Source: Rebecca billardiae RCC1528 (lineage: Eukaryota > Protista > Haptophyta). Taken from it: a stretch of 64,000 nucleotides of DNA. This document shows positions 1 through 35,084 of this stretch, one piece after another (position 1 is the first letter of the stretch; every line of letters begins with the position of its first letter). The translations under genes and the position numbers were made by a program. Below the pieces are notes generated by a model. The model saw only the letters and a program-made list of their open reading frames with translations, ran no database searches and had not been told where the DNA came from. The stretch is from positions 4,340,001 through 4,404,000 of the forward strand of contig OZ251224.1 in assembly GCA_965240325.2 (NCBI GenBank). The letters are read 5' to 3'.

Positions 1-416
1 GCTGCGCGTGCCCCGGCCGTGCAGCGCACGAGCAGGCGCCGCCGCCGCTCCACGCCGCGTCCGGGCGTGGCGATGCGCCGACGGGCGATGGGTTCTCTGC
101 CGCTTCCATCCGCGCGCGGCGTCGCGCGGCGTCGGCGATCGCGATCGGCGACGGTCCGAGCGGGTGGCAGGGTCCGGTCCTGTGACCGCACTCGCGGTCC
201 GTGCAGACCGCGGGCGTGATTGATCTGGCCTCCGCAGACTGAGTGATGAGACTATCCGCTGCCACTCCCGAGTCCCGGACTCCGCGGACGGCTCCGTTGC
301 GGACAGTGATCAAGTTCACCGCCACGTATCCTGACGACGGGCGGAAAGTGCTTAAGCCTTAATGCAGCTGCGCCAGTGAGTATCAGAGTTGGCCGAGCCA
401 CTCGGCCCGCGCCACC

Positions 417-1738
417 GGGTGGAATTCCCATTTTCTGGCGCACTTCCGCACTGGGGAGGCGGAAAAGCGTCATTTAATACGCGAATAAGGAATAAATAAT
501 AAAGGGAATATAAAGCGCACGCGCAGTGCGAAGAAATTTTTCCGGGTGTATCCGCGTAGTTATTATGCGAAGCACCCGAGCTGCTGCGAGGCGGCCTGCT
601 TGCGCACGCGGCGTCCCGAGTACCCTCGGGGCTCACCTGCGGCTCGGCCTGCGCACGCTTAGCAAGCTCGCGTGCGGCCTGCACCTTGCCCGCCGCCTCG
701 ACTCTCGAGCAAGAGGATCGACGTATGAGTGAGCGTGTGCCGCCGAGCTGCTGTCCGGCAGCCACCCGCGACTGCAGCCGCTGGCCGCGGTGCCTGGCCT
801 CGGCGCGGCCCCACAGGCTCAGCGCTGTGAGCTCCTCCTCCTTCTGCGCTCCTCCTCCAGGCGTTTGGGCCGCCGCCGCCTTGGCCGCCTCGTCCTCGTC
901 GATCAGCTGAACGGCGGGAGTGATGTCTCTGCTCAGCTGAGTGTGACGTGACAAGCGAGGCGACGAGCGACGGCAGCCCGGTGACCAAGCCGACGAGCTC
1001 ATCGTACGAGCCGTCACGCGTGCGCTCGTGCCGTGTCTGAGCTGGCTCGCGCTCGTACGCCGACCAGGCTTTGCTCGGACTGAACGCGTCTGCTCGGGCG
1101 TCCTTGCGTGTGCGCTTGGACGGCCGCGGGCCGTCATCTGGTCCGACCGCGCGCAGCTCGATCTCGGAAGCGTTGAGCTGCTCCGCGGTTGACTCGCCCT
1201 CTACCTCAGGCTCGACCACGGCAGCAGGCCCCGCAGCAGCCGCCAGATAGCATCGGCAGGGGCCCCTGCGCCACCCGCCGCCGTCCGCACATCGGCCAGC
1301 TTGCCGCACACGCGCTGGACCACGGCTTGACGCGGATGTGGTGCCAGGTCGTCGTGCCAATCGCTTGGCTATCGACAACGGGCACGGGCACCTCGATCAC
1401 GACAACGCCTGTCGCGTAGGCTGTGTAGCGATGTCCGTCCACGACTCCGTCGTGTGTGGACGGCGCACGCCATCGCGGCCGTGGGCGCAAGTGTCTCGTG
1501 AATTGTTTTTTTAATTCACGAATTCGCCCAGCCGCTACATCGAACTCGACAACGGTTGCTTTTACACCCGCGATCTTTTGACTGTGCAAATGGGGCGCCG
1601 CCCCATGCTCAAATCCGAAGAGAACGAAGATGTAAAAGTGTCTGGTCCCTAGATACTGTGCTGTCCGGGTCCCGGTCCGGTCAGATCTGAGCAGCCGGAT
1701 TTTCCGCCCGGACAGGCCAGAAAATGGGATTTTCACCC
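417..1738. mobile_element. Non-autonomous DNA transposon with terminal inverted repeats (~1.3 kb)
   Basis: Left end 417-439 GGGTGGAATTCCCATTTTCTGGC vs reverse complement of 1716-1738 GGGTGAAAATCCCATTTTCTGGC (21/23 identical). Subterminal GGCGGAAAA (468-476) is inverted at 1700-1708. Flanking direct repeat CACC (413-416, 1739-1742), or CCACCG if the ends are taken as 418/1737. Confidence 0.8.
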
Positions 1739-1823
1739 CACCGTACCGTGACCGTGTTCCGACTATAAATAAAAAGTGACTAATTATATATTATTCGTCA
1801 TCATGACAGCAGCTAGTCGTCTG

Positions 1824-1824
<1 letters not shown>

Positions 1825-1916
<92 letters not shown>
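1825..1916. repeat. (TA)46 microsatellite
   Basis: Pure TA dinucleotide run read directly. Confidence 0.98.
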
Positions 1917-1919
<3 letters not shown>

Positions 1920-2219
1920 CATGACGAGAACTGACGATTATCATCATCATATCGTCATCATCAGCCAGCCAGCCAGGCCGCGGGAGCAGTGACGCCTGCT
2001 TGACACTTGACAGCTGAGTGCTGTGGCCTGTCACCCTGACCCTGTGCGCCACAGTACCGCCCTCATCAGTCGCCAGACGGACGCGTCATCGCCGCGTGAT
2101 CGTCGGCGCCGTATGGTGCCTGCGCTCTGCGCGCCCGCCTACGCCATCACTGCGCCTTGCGGTTTGTGCGTGGTCCACTCGTCGGCGCGGCCCTCATCGT
2201 GGTCGCCGCGCAGTTGCCT

Positions 2220-2317
2220 GCCCGATCAACCGGTGTGTCGGTCAGCCGCACGCTGCACCCACCAGGCGGTGGGCCTATGCAGCTGTCGCGCGGAGACGTC
2301 ATGCGACGATGATGGGC
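2220..2317 (-). promoter_or_regulatory. Candidate SECIS element in the 3' UTR of the SelU-like gene
   Basis: Minus strand: helix I GCCC-AUCA-UCG / CGG-U-UGAU-C-GGGC; AUGAC (plus 2298-2302) ... CGAC (plus 2237-2240) GA quartet; helix II GUC/GAC and CCGCGC/GUGCGG; apical stems GCUGCA/UGCAGC and CCCACC/GGUGGG. The AUGA lies about 50 nt after the stop. Confidence 0.7.
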
Positions 2318-2350
2318 GCCGACTCGCGCCACGCCTGGAGCGGGGCGCAC

Positions 2351-3031
2351 TCACGCCAGCGCCTCGCCAACCCCGGCGGCGCGGAGCACGTCCTCCACCT
2401 CCGGGTGGTCGCCGGGGATCTCGTCCGCCCAGCCGAAGAGCACCGACTCGGCGTCGAGCACAAACGTGCCGCCCAGCCGCAGCACGCCCTCGGGCACCTG
2501 GCCAAAGCCCTCGATGGTGGGCATCACCTTGCCCACGTTGCCCAGATACTTGAGCCACGGGACGTCGGTTGGGGCGCGCAGCTTTGCCGTGGGCTCGCCC
2601 TGCTCCCCGATCTTGCCGAACCCCGCCGCCGCGTACGCGTCGAAGGACTCGCTCGCGTCCGCAAACAGCAGCTCGCGCGGGATCTCGGGGTTGTTGTCGA
2701 GGAAGGTGGTCATCTTCTCGGCGTCGCCGACGGTGACCATGACGGGCCCCGCCATGCCGATGGCCTCGAGCGCGGGGCGCTGCTCGGCCATCTCGTTGGC
2801 GAAGCTCCAGCAGTACGGTCAGCCGAGGTGCCTGAGGAAGACGAGCACGCCGCGCTCGCCGAGCGCCTCGTCGACCGAGAGCCGCGCGCCGTTGCAGTCG
2901 ACGAGCTGCCCGGCGCGGATGTCGGCGGTGGCGATGCTGCGCCCGTTCACGATCACGCCGCCGATCGCGGTCTGGCAGGCGATGCCGTGCGACGCCATGC
3001 CGCCGACTAGCGCGGCAAGTGCGGCCGACAT
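2351..3031 (-). CDS. Selenoprotein, SelU/PRXL2 (AhpC-TSA-like) thioredoxin-fold redoxin, 226 aa with Sec at codon 71
   Basis: ORFs 2819..3031 and 2351..2791 are in the same frame, separated only by TGA at 2819-2821: VLVFLRHLG-U-PYCWSFANEMAEQ (UxxC). C-terminal LRLGGTFVL...DHPEVEDVL is typical of the family. SECIS-like hairpin downstream. Confidence 0.88.
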
Positions 3032-3960
3032 CTTCGAGGTCCAGCGCCCGGCGGCCGCGGAGCTTCGCCTTCGGCGTCCTTCCGCCCAGGACGTACGGTG
3101 ATGAGCGGTGACATCATGCGAAGACTGTGGGCTGCTGCGGATGATTTACAATTCCGTGATGAATGATATGGTATAGTAGTACGATGGCGGCGCCACCGCG
3201 CCAGCGTGGTGGCGCACGCAGCCAGTGCATTCGCCAACGCCGGCTGGGGAACGGCGCAACACAGGAGGTGATTGGTGATTTGCTGGCGCACGGAGGTACA
3301 GTCGGACGGAGTAACGTCGGTGAAGAGTTCGGCGAGGCGCGCATATGATCTGCATTGCGGCGCGACGGAGCCGGGCCCGGAGGCACTCCCCGGCCCGAGT
3401 TTGAGTTAGTGGCCGTGGCCGCGCGGTTGCCGCGAATGACTGGCAATGAGCCACGGCACGCGCCCGATTCACTCGAGCGGGACGGATCATCTGACTTGAC
3501 AGTGCGACCGCGCCTGAGTCACATGGGACGTCGCCGCCTGCCCTCCACGGCAACAGCTCCGCTTTAGACTGCGGTTGAGGCCGGTCGTGCCGGTGTCGCG
3601 TCTACTCACTGGGGCAGACGGGCAACATCGGAGCACCTGCCGAGAGCGCATAGTGTGTACCGAAGGCGCTCTGCCTTCGCCAAATGGCGGCCTGCCCACC
3701 GCGCACGTTGTTCCACGTTGCCGGCCGAGCGGGTCCAGCGGAGAGGCGGCGACGACGGCCTCTTGCTGCAGCGCGCTCGCTCGGGCCGAGAGCCTGAGAG
3801 CCAGGCCAAACTGACTACAGCAAAGAGGAAACTTCAGTCCGGCGTGCGGCTGAAACGCACGACACGGCCTGCCCAAGACGGGACCGGACCACACGCCCCT
3901 CAACCAGGGCAAACGCGCCCAACCACTCGCAGCGGGCCGACGGGCGCGCGCGATCTTGCG

Positions 3961-5350
3961 ATGGCTGACGCTGAGAGCGCGTCGGCAGCTGCCGCCTCGA
4001 ACACCGCCGCCGGCGGCAAGCCGCATGGCGGCGGCCCTTCCTCCAACTTTGTGGAGCACGAGCACACCATCACGCCGCGCGGCACCAAGCTGTACAACAT
4101 CTGCGGCATGCGGTTTGAGGTGGACAAGAAGTACGCAGTGAAGAAGGCGGTGGGGCAGGGGGCGTACGGGCTGGTGTGCTCGGCGCGGATCACGGCGACT
4201 GGCGAGGGCGTGGCCATCAAGAAGATCCCCAAGGCCTTCGACGACCTCATCGACTGCAAGCGGCTGCTCCGAGAGATTAAGATCCTGAAGCACTTCAAGC
4301 ACGACAACGTGCTCGGCATCAAGGACATCATGATGCCGCCGTCGAAGGCGTGGAAGGACGTGGTGCGTGCCTTCGGCCTCGCACCGCCTCGCGCGCGCAC
4401 GCCGGGGCGTGGCGTGCTCGGCGGCCGTGGGCCGGCCGCGTGCGCTGATCCATCCAGCAACCGCCCCCGCGCCCGGCCCGCTGCCGGACGGCTCGGCGGC
4501 CGCGCTGCCCCGCTCTCTCGCGCGCGCGCTTGCGCAGTACATCGTCTCCGAGCTGGCGGACACCGACCTGCACTACATCATCCACTCGAAGCAGCCGCTG
4601 ACCGAGGAGCACAACAAGTACTTCCTGTACCAGATCCTGCGCGGCGTGAAGGTAATCCACTCGGCACACGTGCTGCACCGCGACCTCAAGCCGGGCAACC
4701 TGCTGGTGAACAAGAACTGCGACCTGAAGGTGTGCGACTTCGGGCTCGCGCGCGGGATCATGAGGCCGGGCGAGTCCGGGCCGGTGGGCCAGCTCACAGA
4801 GTACGTCGTCACGCGCTGGTACCGCGCGCCCGAGCTGCTGGTCGAGGCGGACACGTACTCGGCGCCCATCGACATGTGGGCGACCGGCTGCATCTTTGCG
4901 GAGATGCTCGGCCGCAAGGCCGTGTTCCCGGGGCGGGACTACCTCGACCAGCTCAAGCGCATCATCGAGGTGTTGGGCACGCCGTCCGACGAGGACATGC
5001 GCGCCATCTCCAACCCGCAGGCCGCGTCCTTCCTGCGCTCGCTGCCGCGCAAGACGAAGCGGCCGTGGAGCGACATCTACCCCAAGGCGACGCCGCAGGC
5101 GCTCGAGCTGCTCGACAAGATGCTCGCGTTCAACCCGGCCAAGCGCATCTCGGTGGTGGACGCGCTCGCGCACCCGTACCTCGCGCAGCTGCACAACGCC
5201 GCGCACGAGGCGACCGCGCCCGCCTTCTCCTTCGACTTCGACCGGCCCGACGTGACCAAGGCCGACCTCACCTCGCAGATCTGGGCGGAGATGCTGCACT
5301 TCCACCCGGAGGCAAAAGACCTGCCCGACACACACACGGAGGACGACTGA
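3961..5350 (+). CDS. Mitogen-activated protein kinase (TEY); exons 3961-4362, 4538-5350
   Basis: GQGAYGLV, VAIKK, HRDLKPGN, DFG, LTEYVVTRWYRAPE motifs; GT-AG intron 4363-4537 joins KDV|YIVSEL. Confidence 0.95.
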
Positions 5351-6033
5351 GGGTGGGGCCGGCGGCGCGCGGCGGTGGGCCGCACGGGCCGAGGCTCCGC
5401 CGCTGGGGCGGGCCGCGCGCTGCGCCGCGCGGCTGGGGCTGCGCTGCGCTTCAGGCCCCCGCCTGTCGACTGTCTCGGCTGCGCTCGCTGTGTGACTCGG
5501 CCGGCGGGTTGCGGTTCGATCGGGCGGCGGCGGCCCGATCGCTGGGCTGTCGGTCCCCGTCAGGATTCGGCAGCGGCTGTGGCTTGCGGTCAAGAGGAGG
5601 CTGCAGCCAAGCGGGCAGCGTGCCCGGAGTCGCCGGGTCGGACGGTGCGGTCGGGCAACGGGTCACGAGCACGCACTCGGAGCATCAGCGCCAGCGCGAT
5701 ACCAGTCGTCCCGAGCGGCGGCGCCAGTGCTGAGCTGTGCTGAGCCTGAGTGCAGCGCGGGGCCGGGCGCCGAGCGCGCTGCCGGCTGCTGGTCTGCGCG
5801 GGCGGGTCATCCGATACTTCCGATAGTTATATAGCAGCTATATTAAATTATTGGGTGATGATTCGCATATCGATTACTTTTTCTTTTAAATACTACGCCG
5901 AATAATAATCTGATTTACACGGTCTTAGAATTAACCCGTGGCTGACGAGGATCAGCAGTGCTCATATGCCAGCGGCTGCTGCGGGCAGCGGCGTCGGCCG
6001 TGGCGCCGTGCCCGCGAGGCAGAGGGTCCGCCG

Positions 6034-7190
6034 TCACAGCCGGTCATCGTGGTTGCGGTTGCCGCCCTTCACCGGCTTGCTCCCGCCGCCGTCGCCGCCG
6101 CCGTCGCCGCCTGCGAACCACTGGATGTACACGATGAGGCAGATGAACGCGATGAGCGCGATGATGATGCCGATCATGATGAACTTGTTCGCGATCGCGC
6201 GGCGCGCCATGCCCTGCAGAATCCTGCGGCTGCGCGCCAGGTCTGTGTCCGCCCCTCTCAACTGCGGCACAGCCGGGGGCGCGGGCGGGCGGGCGCGCGG
6301 CGCACTCAGCGTGGCGGCGCGCGGACTCGCTGGGCAGCGCGCGGCGCGCGCGCGCGCGCACCTTGTCCCGCGTGCTCTCGAGCGTCTCGCGCTGCGAGCT
6401 CAGGTCGCCGAGGATGCCCTCCCCGATCTGCTCCGTCTCGAGCACGATGCGGTGCGCCTCCTCGAGCCGGGTGGAGGACTTGTGCAGCGACTCGGTCTGG
6501 GCGAGCAGCCGCGCGCGCTGGGACTGCGCCTCGGCCTTGAGCGCGGCGGATTCGGAGGAGCGCGCGCCGCCGAGGAGCTCGTCGCGAGCGGCGACGGTCG
6601 AGGGGAACGCGGCGCGCGCGTCCTTGTACCCTGCGCGCGCGCCAGCGCGCAGCGGCTCGTGTGAGCGCAGGCGAGTGGCAGCGCGCGAGAGGCGCGCGCG
6701 CGCGCTGCGGCACTCACGGCTCTTCATGTCGGCGAGCGTGGCCTTGTACCCGCGCACCCGCGTCTGCAGCTCACTCCGCTTCTCGCCCGTCATCGAGCGC
6801 ACCTCGAGGTCCATCTGCTGCACCTGCGCGCGCGCGGGCACACACACGCACGCGCGCGCGGCGCCGGGCTCGCCCGCGCGTGAGTGCGCGCTCGCGAGGG
6901 GCGCGCGGGCGGGAGCGCGGCGGTTGGAGCCTCGCGCGGCGCGCACCAGGGACTCAGCCTCGCCAATCTCCTTCTCCACCTTTGACGCCGTCTTGGCGCG
7001 CTCGTCTGAGCGAGGCAGCGCGAGGGTGGGGTGGGGTGTGTCGGCGCGCATCCGCGCATCGGCGCTCGCGCGACGGCGCGCGCTCGCGCGCACCACCAGT
7101 CGCATTCGGCAGGGCGGCCACGCTGCTGTTGATGACAGTGGTCGTGTTCTTGAACTCCTGCTCGTAGTTGTCGAACATGTTCTCGGCCAT
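6034..7190 (-). CDS. VTI1: Qb-SNARE Vti1; exons 7190-7094, 7005-6947, 6823-6718, 6630-6362, 6261-6034
   Basis: MFDNYEQEF start, QMDLEVRS, ETEQIGEGILGDLSSQRETL SNARE motif, C-terminal TM helix KFIMIGIIIALIAFICLIVYI; four GT-AG introns restore the frame. Confidence 0.9.
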
Positions 7191-7473
7191 CAGGCGCGCT
7201 GAGCACGGCTTGCGGCGCGGCGGCTGGGGAGGGCGGCCACGCCCGCCGCCTGGCGCCTGGGTCTTCAGGATGGCTCCACAGCTCCAGCGCTGGCCCTTCC
7301 ACAGTCAAGGTTTCGTCAGCGAGCCATTGTACCAGGCCATCACTCGATCACGATGGCGGCTTCAGGACGTGACGCCATCATGGGGCATGGTAGTCAAGAT
7401 ACTGTGACAGCTTGCTGATGGCAGCACTGCCAGTCTCAAAGTGGCATGAGGCGCATCACATCATCCCCGAGCG

Positions 7474-10400
7474 TCAGATCGCGATGGCGGGCAGGTGCGT
7501 GCGCTGCCGCCGCCCCCTGTCGCGCTTGCCCCCGCTGTACCCCTTGCCCGAGGCCGCGTGCAGCTGCGGTGGCGGGGAGGTCCCGTACACGCGCTCGAGG
7601 GGCGGCAGCTGCGGCGGGGGCGAGCCGTTGCGCACCTCCTCCGCCTCGCGCAGCCGCCGCGCCACCTCGGCGCGCCGCCGCTCGCCCGCCAGCCGCTGCT
7701 CCTCGTGCAGCCGCCGCCTCCTCCACTCGACTTTCTCGATGGCCTCCTGCTGCAGCCTGCGCCCACGGCGCGCACGCCAGGGCGCGGCGCGCGGCGGGCG
7801 CGCACCGGGCGGCGCGGCGCGGCGCGGCGCGGCGTGAGCGACTGCGCTGGCGCGGCGCGCGCGCGCGCGGGAGCGCGGGGGCGTGGACGGGCGCGGCGGC
7901 GGCGCGCGCGGCGCTGGTGCGCGCTGCACCTCCGCTGCTGGCGGAACGCCTCCCTCGCGTCCTGGACGGACTGCTCGAGCACGTACTGGCGGCGCGCGAG
8001 GAAGTCCGCCTCCTTCTTGCGCCGCTCCGCCGCCTCCGCCTCCCGCTGCGCCGCGCGCAGCCGCTCGCGCTCGGCGGCGATGCCCGAGCGCTTCTGCCGC
8101 GCGCGTCGGATCGCCGCGTGCTCGCGCGCCAGCCGCTCGCGCTGCAGCTGCTCGACGCGCGCCTGCATCGCGCTCATGCTCGCCTCCCACTCCTCCTCGG
8201 CGCTCATCCCGCGCTCGCGCGGCTGGCGGCTGCGCGCGGCGCGCGGCGCGCGGCGCGGGCGCGCGGGGCCGCGGCGGGCGCGCGCGCTCGGCACACGGGC
8301 GCGCGCGCGCGCCGTGGCACGGCGCGCGGCGCGCGCGCGCGGCATGCGCGGCAGCGCGCGCGCAGCGCACCTGGAGCGATGGCTGGCGTGCGCGCTCTCC
8401 GCGCCGGGCGGGAGCAGGTGCGTCGGCAGACTCCACGCCGCCTCGGGCGGGCCCGGCCGCACGAGCGTCTGACGCGGCGCGCCGCCCGCGGCCGGCGGCG
8501 TCGCGTCCTGTCTCGCCTTGCGCACAGCGCGCAGGAAGCTCTCAGCCGCGCCCGCGCGCTGCCCCGCCGCGCGCGCGTCCAGCCTGGGCCCGTCGTGCGC
8601 GCCCTGCTCGTCGCCGAGCGCGCTGGAGTCGGAGCCCGAGCTGCCGGACTCTGCCCGCTCCTCCGGCTGCGCACGGGGCGCGGGCCCCGCCTCCGACGGC
8701 GCAGGCACCGGCAGCGAGGGCCTGGCCAGCGGGGGCGCGGGCATGCGCGCATGTGCGCGCGCCCAGATGGTGCGCACGCGCGCGTCGAGGGCGGCGGGCT
8801 GCGGGCCCTGCTCGGGGCGCAGCGCGTCGAGGGTCGCGAGCAGCGCCTGCACTTGCGGCACCGCGACGGCGAGCGCGGCGTCACTCACCGCCACCGTGAG
8901 GCCGGCCGCTCCCGGCGCCGCGGGGTCAGCATGGCCGCCCGGGGCGGCGGCGGCGGCGTTCACGGCAGCGGCGGTGGCGGCGGGGTTGACGAGCGCGTCC
9001 GTCGCGTGCCACTCGTGCGCGAGCACGTCGAGCAGCGCCGCGCCCGCGTCGGTGCTCCCCTCCAGCATCTCCTCGGGCACCACCGTGCCCTCGTCCGCCC
9101 AGCGCACCGAGCTGGCGACCGCGGCCGCGGCGTCCGCGGCGCCGCCCCAGTCGCCGCCGGCGCCGGCGCCGGCGTCCGCCTCGGGGCCAAAGTCGAAGGC
9201 GACGCTGAGCTGGGCGGCGGCGGCGAGCGCGGCGAGGCCGGGCGTGCCCGCCGAGCCGGCGGGCGCGGCGGGCGCGCTGCGCTCGCGCAGCCGCACGCTC
9301 ACGCGCGCGCCGGCCGCGCCGCCGCGCACGGCGGCGCGCGCGGCCGCGCCGCGCCGCGCCGCGCCGCGCGCGCGCGCCTGCCGCGCGGCGCTGCTCGTCG
9401 CGAGGCCGACGACGAGCGCGCGCGCGAGCGCGGCGCGCGCGTGCTGCGCCCGCGCCTCGGCCGCCGCGCCGTCGCCGCCCTCCGCCTCCGTGCCGCCGCC
9501 GCCGCCGCCGGAGGCGGAGGCGACGGTGGTGGGCGCGGCCGCGCCCAGCGCGCGCGCGAGGCGCAGCAACTCGAGCGGGCGGCGCGCGGCGCGCATGCGC
9601 GCGGCGCCCTGCAGCCGCCTCGCCGCCGCCTCGCCCACCGCGCCCGCGCGCGTGCGCTGCACCATCCCCGCGCGCGCCGCCAGCCGCCGCCGCGCCGCGC
9701 GCCGCCTCGCCGCCGCCTGGATGGTCCGGATCTGCGCCATGTGCCGCGCCATCGCGTGCTCGCGGTACCGCTGCTGCACGACGCGCGCGGCGCGGGCCTC
9801 GCGGAGGCGCAGCGCCTGCGCGTTGAGCACCGCCTGCTCCGCCTCGGTGCGCTTGCGCTCGCGCCGCTCCTTCGCCTTCTTCGGCGCCACGCTCGCCATC
9901 ACGCCGCCCCTCGAGTTGATGTTGATCACGTGCTGCAGCGCGCGCGCCGCGTACTCGATGGCGCGCTCGTCGGGCGAGGTGTCGAGGACGCGCTGCAGGT
10001 CGGCCTCGACGCCGAGCTTGCGCAGCTTGCGCGCCGCGCCCACCTGGTTCGACATGTTGCGCACGCCCGCCACCACGTACAGCGCCACCGTCGTGTCCGC
10101 CATCGCCTCGGTGTCGCGCAGCAGCTCGGCCATCAGCTCGACGCCGCCCGCGTCGGAGAGCTGGCGGTGGCCGTTGAGGCAGGCGATGTTGGTGAGCGTG
10201 GAGAGGGCGAGCACGACGGGGCGCGACGACGCGGGCTCGCCCGCGCGCCGGTGGTTGCGCACCAGCCGCACCATCAGCGGCGCCACGCGCTCCGCCTCGC
10301 ACAGCTCGAGCGCGCGCGCGCTGTGCTGCTCGCCCGACACCTTGGCGAGGATGAAGGAGAGCTCCTGCAGAGGGCGGCGGTCGGTGACCAGGCCCGTGCC

Positions 10401-32106: not shown

Positions 32107-33011
32107 TCGGCGCGTGCAGTGCCGACCAGACCCGGCTCGGCGCGGGCCGACGGACCGCGCGCTTATTGGCAGCTCGCAGGATCCGCTAAATAGTAGCTAG
32201 CCTCGCAGACCAGACTGCTCGGCGCCTCACACCATCAGTGACTCATCATTCCAGTGCGAACTAGTCGCCTAGAGTCTGCCGATGCCGCGGATTAGACGAA
32301 CTTTGATGTCAGACTGAGTAGTCAAGCGCCTTAGGATAGTCAGTCTAGTCACGGCGTGATGAAGCGGCTGGTGCCACTCCTTCACAGTGGCAGCACAGCG
32401 TCGTCATCACTTGACGAATGAGAACTCTTGATGTTGATGACAGGATCAATTCTCTCATCACACCAAACGACGTCAGTTCACTTTCTGTCTTGCACCAAGC
32501 GGTGCCTTTTCTTCATTGGGTCGAATGTATGAGTATCAGCTCGGTAAACTGAAGCGACATGGGCGGAACGCTTCGACCGAGGTGATGACGATAATTGCGT
32601 GATAGTCATCCATGGATCGGTTTTCACAAGCCGGATTGCGAGCGCAACTTGATCACCCGCCGCCTACCACAAGTGAGATGTCAAGCGACACCAGTGCAAT
32701 CACGACATACGCACGTTGAGTATATTCATGATGTGGAAAGCGAATGTCTCACAACACACGCAGGGGTACAACTATTGGGGAAACTGGAAACGCGAGTAAT
32801 GTACCTACCAAACATTCATCATCACTTTTGAGCACCCGTGTACTCTCAAGATCAAAGTTGAAATGATGAAGGCTGTAGTTATTTCCGCAACAAAGCCACC
32901 CTGCCTGCGCTTGCGCATTTTCAATTTGATCACGACTTCACGAGTCACGACCCGGAAATCGCATCCGAATGAGCCGCCATACTGAAACCGAAATCGCGCG
33001 CAATATATATT

Positions 33012-34169: not shown

Positions 34170-35084
34170 CTGATACAATCATCAGCTGCCCAAGTCGATC
34201 GGCTGCGGACACTGCGGTCAGGACTCAGGGTCAGGGCAGACGCGCCGCCACGCGCGCGTGCCCCGGCTGCTGACGGAATGCATGATGGTGCCCCACTCTA
34301 GCGGCTACGCCGCCAGCGCCACTAGGTATACCACAGGTTACTCACTCCGCCGAGTATACCAGTAGCCCTGGCCTTATTACTCCGGCGCCCGCGCGGGCGG
34401 CCGCGGGCCGCCCTTACTCTGAGTCTGATGCCACGACGGACCGGGTATACGGTCGTAGCTATAGTAGTATATAGCGCAGGCCCGGACCGACGGTCAGGGC
34501 TCCGCGAGCCTCCGCGCCAGCGCCAGCGGCCCACAGACGGCCGGAGGCTGAGTGCCCACTGGCACTGTGGCCCGTCACACCCCGCCGCGACGCCGCACTG
34601 CTGTACAGACAGTCTGGCGGAGCACCGCAGTAAGCAGTCGCGGACCCGGATTTGCCGGTGGCGGGCGGTACCGTTCGTTCACATGCGCCAGCGTTGACGC
34701 GACGACTTCGACGAAGAATTAAGCCATCACGATGAGGATCGCGCGATGTTATTGAATGATGTATTGCGGGCCGCTCGCGTCGATCCCGGCGGCCGGCAGT
34801 GCAGAGCGGTGCCGCGCACTCACTCTGCGCACCGGCGGATGCTGATTCAGACGTGCGCGCGCGCCCGAGGCGGATGATGCCGTGACGCGGCGCGCCGTCG
34901 GTGTGCGCTGCGTCGTCGCCCGGGTGCTCGTCGACATGAAACGCGGCCGCCTCGCAGCGCACGGCTGCCCATGCGACCAGAGCGCAGGGGCCGTGCGTGC
35001 CAGGGCACTGACTCCCGCAGCGCGATCGGGCGCGCGCGCTCAGCCGCCCGCGGGCGCGCGCTCGCGCCGCGCGCCCGCGGTGGC

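Follow-up and report, generated by a model that had tools for sequence, protein, structure and literature searches.

Within the window, by which we mean the whole 64,000-nucleotide stretch of DNA that was analysed, the minus strand carried a gene whose reading frame was broken by one UGA, followed in its predicted 3' UTR by a hairpin with the features of a SECIS element (Table 1). The AUGA core of the hairpin started 49 nt downstream of the gene's stop codon, and the in-frame UGA lay approximately 520 nt upstream of the element.

Table 1. Coordinates of the host gene and of the parts of the hairpin, listed 5' to 3' on the minus strand; model A is the fold in which GA 2239-2238 closes the quartet.
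Feature	Position	Strand	Details
Host gene	ATG 3031 to stop 2353-2351	-	Translation; frame broken by one UGA
In-frame UGA (Sec codon)	2821-2819	-	Motif VLVFLRHLG-U-PYCWSFA
Helix I, 5' strand	2317-2307	-	GCCCAUCAUCG; partner 2232-2220; sequence and model A
Internal loop, 5' side (UCGC)	2306-2303	-	Immediately precedes the core; unpaired in model A
SECIS core, 5' half (AUGA)	2302-2299	-	Sequence; C2298 is next and forms a C.C mismatch with C2240
Helix II, 5' strand	2297-2288	-	GUC 2297-2295; U2294 unpaired or U.U; CCGCGC 2293-2288
Bulge GACA	2287-2284	-	Place of the AAR motif; unpaired in the MFE and constrained folds
Helix III, long mini-stem	2283-2252	-	MFE and every constrained fold
Helix II, 3' strand	2251-2241	-	GUGCGG 2251-2246; CU 2245-2244 unpaired; GAC 2243-2241; model A
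SECIS core, 3' half (GA)	2239-2238	-	Partner of G2300 and A2299 in putative sheared G.A/A.G pairs
Internal loop, 3' side (CACAC)	2237-2233	-	Model A
Helix I, 3' strand (CGG-U-UGAU-C-GGGC)	2232-2220	-	11 bp, two 1-nt bulges, both on the 3' strand; model A

The C-terminal piece of the host protein matched the Pfam family AhpC-TSA_2 (SelU/PRXL2 family) with an E value of 7e-5 and 23.5 bits, the gathering score being 27 bits, and the gene possessed a UPYC motif of the U/CxxC redox type. A word search returned 118 homologues, mostly of about 140 residues, a length suggesting that gene callers cut these proteins at the same UGA; many homologues of the host protein were pre-annotated as PF13911, and those with names belonged to stramenopile algae (Florenciella, Chrysophaeum and Pelagophyceae sp. 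CCMP2097). In the 90 loci that were fetched, as in the roughly 80 orthologous loci, nearly all had UGA at the same position of the motif and one had Cys. As the in-frame UGA is kept at the same site in orthologues, the host gene needs a SECIS. It might be argued that the gene is instead a decaying pseudogene, or is untranslated past the UGA, and that the hairpin is a functionless relic, with an apical motif and a helix II that depart from the textbook form. We find this barely credible, since both halves of the reading frame were intact with the invariant family residues present, the gene and the hairpin were unchanged in three independent assemblies of the same species, and an orthologue known from marine transcriptome assemblies (L008) had the same ACA variant in its apical motif. 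Strain variants showed zero substitutions within the hairpin, so that no population-level covariation was usable.

The preliminary description, which had been made from the sequence alone, had proposed a hairpin with a helix I, an AUGA...GA core, the tetranucleotide GACA and the stems GCUGCA/UGCAGC and CCCACC/GGUGGG. All of these were found in the minus-strand sequence, each in its described place, in a hairpin at exactly 2220-2317. AUGA and GA flanked helix II in register for a quartet, with a purine (A) before the UGA, placed so that the quartet could adopt the tandem G.A/A.G non-Watson-Crick geometry. Helix II occupied 12 positions on its 5' strand in model A, with nine pairs of Watson-Crick or G.U type, one U.U and, on the 3' strand, a bulge of 1 nt; above the C2298/C2240 mismatch came GUC/GAC, then U2294.U2244 with C2245 bulged, then CCGCGC/GUGCGG. 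The AUGA...GA core with a helix II of about 10 bp was present as described; in model A the GA that closes the quartet is 2239-2238 and the helix is divided into 3 and 6 bp. Where the description had noted the lack of AA at the canonical spot, nucleotides 12-15 after AUGA read G-A-C-A, and A2286, nucleotide 13, is kept. Helix III consisted of a lower stem of 6 bp (GCUGCA 2283-2278 with UGCAGC 2257-2252) and an upper stem of 6 bp (CCCACC 2273-2268 with GGUGGG 2263-2258), the two being separated by the 4-nt bulge UAGG and the upper one closed by the tetraloop GCCU (2267-2264). The criteria for SECIS form 2 include a helix II of roughly 9-13 bp, a helix I and an additional helix 3 above an A-rich bulge; the length of helix II lay within this range, and both of the other helices were found in the hairpin.

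Two GA dinucleotides could close the quartet, either 2239-2238 (model A) or 2243-2242 (model B). Constrained folding gave -44.8 kcal/mol for model A and -36.7 kcal/mol for model B; the unconstrained minimum free energy (MFE) was -50.1 kcal/mol, in a fold that retained upper helix II and the whole apex, which places the SECIS conformation of model A 5.3 kcal/mol above the MFE. Model A had the top helix II score among all choices of GA, with 10 pairs and no mismatch, and its 3' strand reads GAC-C-GA-CA, the 3' motif of the gene family; GAC-[C/U]-GA-CA on the 3' strand agrees with the orthologue 3' consensus GACUGACA. The same hairpin might still be a SECIS with its quartet formed through the upstream GA 2243-2242, which sits in CUGAC, the commonest orthologue 3' motif being CUGA-C, and for which model B can be drawn with the helices GUC/GGC and GCGC/GUGC, a 3-nt 5' bulge and the helix I GUCG/CGAC. 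We hold this register to be quite improbable, as model B is 8 kcal/mol less stable with a lower helix II score, as a covariance model built from orthologues selected the GA 2239-2238 register, and as model A matches the layout of the two closest orthologues, described below.

Support for the SECIS reading also came from the 3' UTRs of orthologous genes, in which a common element recurred: AUGA, a C facing U or C, a helix started by G-C, and GAC-[U/C]-GA-C on the 3' side. AUGA followed by C and then G was invariant or nearly so in the orthologue alignment. From 32 of these elements RNAalifold predicted that a helix II of 10 bp sits immediately on the core, with compensatory changes at 10 of the 10 pairs. 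When 51 elements, all of them model matches in orthologous UTRs, were aligned to the model, 84% of cells were paired compared to 56.5% after shuffling, and the covariation score was 0.752 compared to 0.27 for shuffled and 0.12-0.19 for slid registers. That the orthologous elements form a SECIS family is therefore well supported. The element in the window shares the family core, AUGA-C-G ... GAC-[C/U]-GA-CA, and in the close orthologues examined the core started 53-113 nt after the stop codon. Published consensus for the 3' core is K-GA-W (PMC3753652, PMC2647825), from which C-GA-C in the window deviates; the orthologues mostly have U-GA-C or C-GA-C, with C-GA also in the pelagophyte orthologues L093, L096 and L097, which makes this deviation a trait of the gene family rather than of the window copy alone. 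Beyond short core motifs, local alignments of the window UTR with the UTRs of six orthologues were at or near background, with two exceptions: L093, where the alignment fell on the 5' arm of the SECIS (z of about 2.3), and L097, whose unexplained match is described below. Six prasinophyte-like orthologues located on large metagenome contigs (L019, L023, L036, L054, L084 and L090) had a GUGA core instead of AUGA, and several of these carried single-A bulges (UCGA, UCAC) in place of AA.

The closest comparison was with L008, whose protein is 56% identical to the window protein, and L004, a genomic contig with an intron whose protein is 57% identical. In constrained folds these two and the window element shared one architecture: a mismatch, 3 bp, a small internal loop, 6-7 bp, a 5' bulge of 3-4 nt beginning at nucleotide 12-13, and helix III. 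The bulges were aligned with one another and read ACAC in L008, the canonical CAA in L004 and GACA in the window, so that position 13 was A in all three, while position 14 was A in L004 and C in both L008 and the window. The extra length of the window apex is an added 6-bp stem below the CCCACC/GGUGGG hairpin, which itself resembles CCAC/GUGG in L008. The apparent intron in L004 (L004:1296-1378) lies in the coding sequence right after U-PYCW; the window gene was without an intron there.

Stability and chance were evaluated for the hairpin and for the UTR that contains it. The fold energy was ordinary for a sequence of about 70% GC (z = -1.38), so stability alone proves nothing. When the 421-nt UTR was shuffled 500 times with its dinucleotides preserved, 2.2% of the shuffles gave AUGA...GA with an equally good helix II, and three comparable AUGA/GA pairs were found in 128 kb, the two strands of the 64-kb window being counted together. 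A covariance model (R1) trained on 32 orthologous SECIS scored the window element at 7.7 bits with an E value of 0.22 in a search of 1 kb, where it ranked second overall and best on the strand of the gene; when R1 was run over the whole window with E values up to 10, the element was not among the matches. Of the evidence that speaks against a SECIS, this low score weighs most, but it is not decisive, R1 being dominated by AT-rich seeds and true GC-rich orthologues also scoring only 11-20 bits. A second model from GC-rich orthologues only was abandoned: MAFFT misaligned the 3' arms, and the model-guided alignment included three likely false matches. Rfam cmscan of positions 1-8000 and of 1930-2360 (a 431-nt search), with E values up to 10, returned no SECIS. 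The Rfam SECIS model also detected 0 of 18 orthologous loci, including those with a canonical AA, and its silence on the window element is for this reason uninformative.

A rival reading takes the hairpin for a chance GC-rich stem-loop, with the real SECIS situated elsewhere in the transcript, for example at GUGA 2150-2147 with GA 2067-2066 or past the (AT)n repeat. Any stretch of a genome with about 70% GC folds stably, the model trained on orthologues gave only 7.7 bits, and the GUGA 2150/GA 2067 pair reached a helix II score of 7, GUGA cores being known from the prasinophyte-like orthologues. Nevertheless, among the AUGA and GUGA cores scored from 2353 to about 2030, the core of the hairpin had a helix II score of 8 and all others scored 7 or less, and no ungapped canonical helix II was found down to position 1500. 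The fold at GUGA 2150 left 2 and 4 nt unpaired beside the core and had a branched, Y-shaped apex, a shape excluded by published SECIS filters (PMC2375036). It also lacked the family motifs AUGA-C-G and GAC-N-GA-C, and every pelagophyte-like orthologue examined had AUGA, not GUGA. A further AUGA at 2089 had no pairing 3' arm (score -2), and past 1930 the sequence is the (AT)n repeat. A chance stem-loop, with the SECIS located outside it, is on this evidence unlikely.

The UTR contained other sequences of interest. At 2066-2089 on the minus strand, a second AUGA-CGCG stretch matched the SECIS 5' arm of L097 at 22 of 25 positions, with an alignment score for 2089-2066 of 33, where none of 200 shuffles exceeded 27; the stretch lacks a pairing 3' arm and a GA that could serve, and may be coincidental or the relic of an element. 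Because the region around AUGA 2089 aligns along the hairpin, a tandem duplication was considered; it was rejected, as its score was not above that of shuffles (76/1000) or of the genomic background (83/633). About 430 nt after the stop codon lies a long (AT)n microsatellite (1815-1925), at which all public contigs of the species break and which draws spurious Rfam matches to miRNA and snoRNA. Public records gave no RNA run for this sequence. A 244-nt contig from a public run whose kind is unstated spans 2143-2386 unbroken, including the stop codon and the entire hairpin, and a second contig of the same run covers 2870-3038. The predicted mRNA contains both, although the ends of a transcript cannot be read from contigs. 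Same-species Logan contigs were colinear with the genome and ended at the (AT)n repeat; being genomic and stopping there, they are uninformative on where the UTR ends.

Given its position, its AUGA/GA core, both helices and the architecture that it has in common with orthologues, the minus-strand hairpin 2220-2317 very probably works as a SECIS, as the preliminary description had considered possible. On this reading it is the form-2 (type II) element that serves the AhpC-TSA_2/SelU-like selenoprotein gene upstream of it, and GA 2239-2238 makes up the 3' half of its core. If it acts within the general eukaryotic Sec pathway, AUGA 2302-2299 and GA 2239-2238 would form the kink-turn quartet in the 3' UTR of the mRNA, and this quartet would be recognised, probably by a SECIS-binding protein of the SBP2 family. 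The 12 positions of helix II would set the unpaired GACA at the usual place of the AAR motif, with A13 kept and the second A changed to C. The SECIS-binding protein would recruit eEFSec and Sec-tRNA(Sec), and as a result the ribosome would then decode UGA 2821-2819 as selenocysteine.

Replacement of apical adenines by cytosines is a natural feature of CC-type SECIS, examples of which are mammalian SelM and SelO. The window element is like this type (the NTGA__CC__GA pattern, PMC2375036) in that cytosine takes the place of an apical adenine, but it replaces the second A only, giving the mixed run A-C-A. It is also like form 2 or type II SECIS (Rfam SECIS_1, RF00031) in its location in the predicted 3' UTR, its helix I, internal loop and AUGA/GA core and its helix II of about 12 positions, and like form 2 as described in PMC2647825 in its unpaired A/C-rich bulge on the 5' strand, extra helix 3 and small apical loop. 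In contrast to form 2, the bulge is GACA rather than AAR, the 3' core is C-GA-C rather than K-GA-W, a C.C mismatch stands right next to the quartet, and helix II contains a U.U and a 1-nt bulge. Long apical mini-stems are known for the SECIS of Ostreococcus, of Chlamydomonas and of a deiodinase-like gene in Dictyostelium (Lobanov et al. 2007, PMC2375036), which the window element resembles in its apical helix 3, far longer than the 2-7 bp usual in animals; its host, like Ostreococcus and Chlamydomonas, is an alga. Ostreococcus SECIS have G before the quartet (GUGA) whereas the window has A, and the window mini-stem, unlike the long mini-stems of PMC2375036, is split by a 4-nt bulge.

SECISaln gives the apical consensus as a 'run of Ms', M standing for A or C (PMC2647825), and ACA, as a run of A and C, falls inside this published consensus. 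In the literature we found no published description of the exact A-C-A variant. Bulges such as ACA, ACAC, UCAC, UCGA and AUA recurred in pelagophyte-like and prasinophyte-like orthologues, including those with GUGA cores. The classic SECISearch primary pattern is NTGA, AA or CC after 10-13 nt, and GA after 15-39 nt (PMC2375036). Neither part of it is matched by the window element, as GACA contains neither AA nor CC and the GA comes about 44 nt after the bulge; among 62 distinct orthologous SECIS, drawn from several algal lineages, only 19 fitted the AA spacing rule and 30 a loosened version of it. The earlier proposal of a lineage-specific SECIS form is thus not borne out: ACA lies within the published A/C consensus with A13 kept, long mini-stems were already known, the ACA of L008 belongs to another species, and most orthologous SECIS depart from the AA rule. 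The element is an ordinary two-part SECIS with ACA for AA and a long tip, traits that are common to related algae. The SECIS biology here appears standard, an A-to-C change in the apical motif being tolerated, and this change does not make the element one of a new kind.

Mutations of the AAR motif in mammals prevent Sec insertion, and the partner of this motif is unknown (PMC2792357). A tentative possibility is that many marine algae do without the AAR motif at the apex. If so, the algal Sec machinery would read the SECIS apex unlike the animal one, and selenoproteome surveys filtered on AA or CC would undercount algal selenoproteins. The practical value of the element lies in annotation. With a plausible SECIS for its in-frame UGA, the argument that the alga has an unannotated selenoprotein gene is complete, and both pieces of the ORF should be joined in the annotation as a single Sec-containing protein of roughly 226 residues. 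Filters that need AA or CC at 10-13 nt and an apex of no more than 39 nt would reject the window element and about two thirds of its orthologues. Since AA/CC pattern filters and Rfam miss the window element and most of its relatives, annotation of the selenoproteomes of GC-rich marine algae needs lineage-trained models.

Two further hairpins with SECIS-like features were observed on the plus strand of the window. At 32529-32600, AUGA was followed by a helix II of about 13 positions, the canonical bulge AAA, a 7-bp helix III with a 12-nt loop, and GA; a homeobox ORF rich in Q and P ends (stop codon 32106) about 420 nt before this hairpin, no selenoprotein ORF was found upstream of it, and Rfam gave no SECIS match. 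At 34756-34806, AUGA and GA stood around a near-perfect GC-rich hairpin that had no unpaired A and whose helix II score equalled that of the main candidate.
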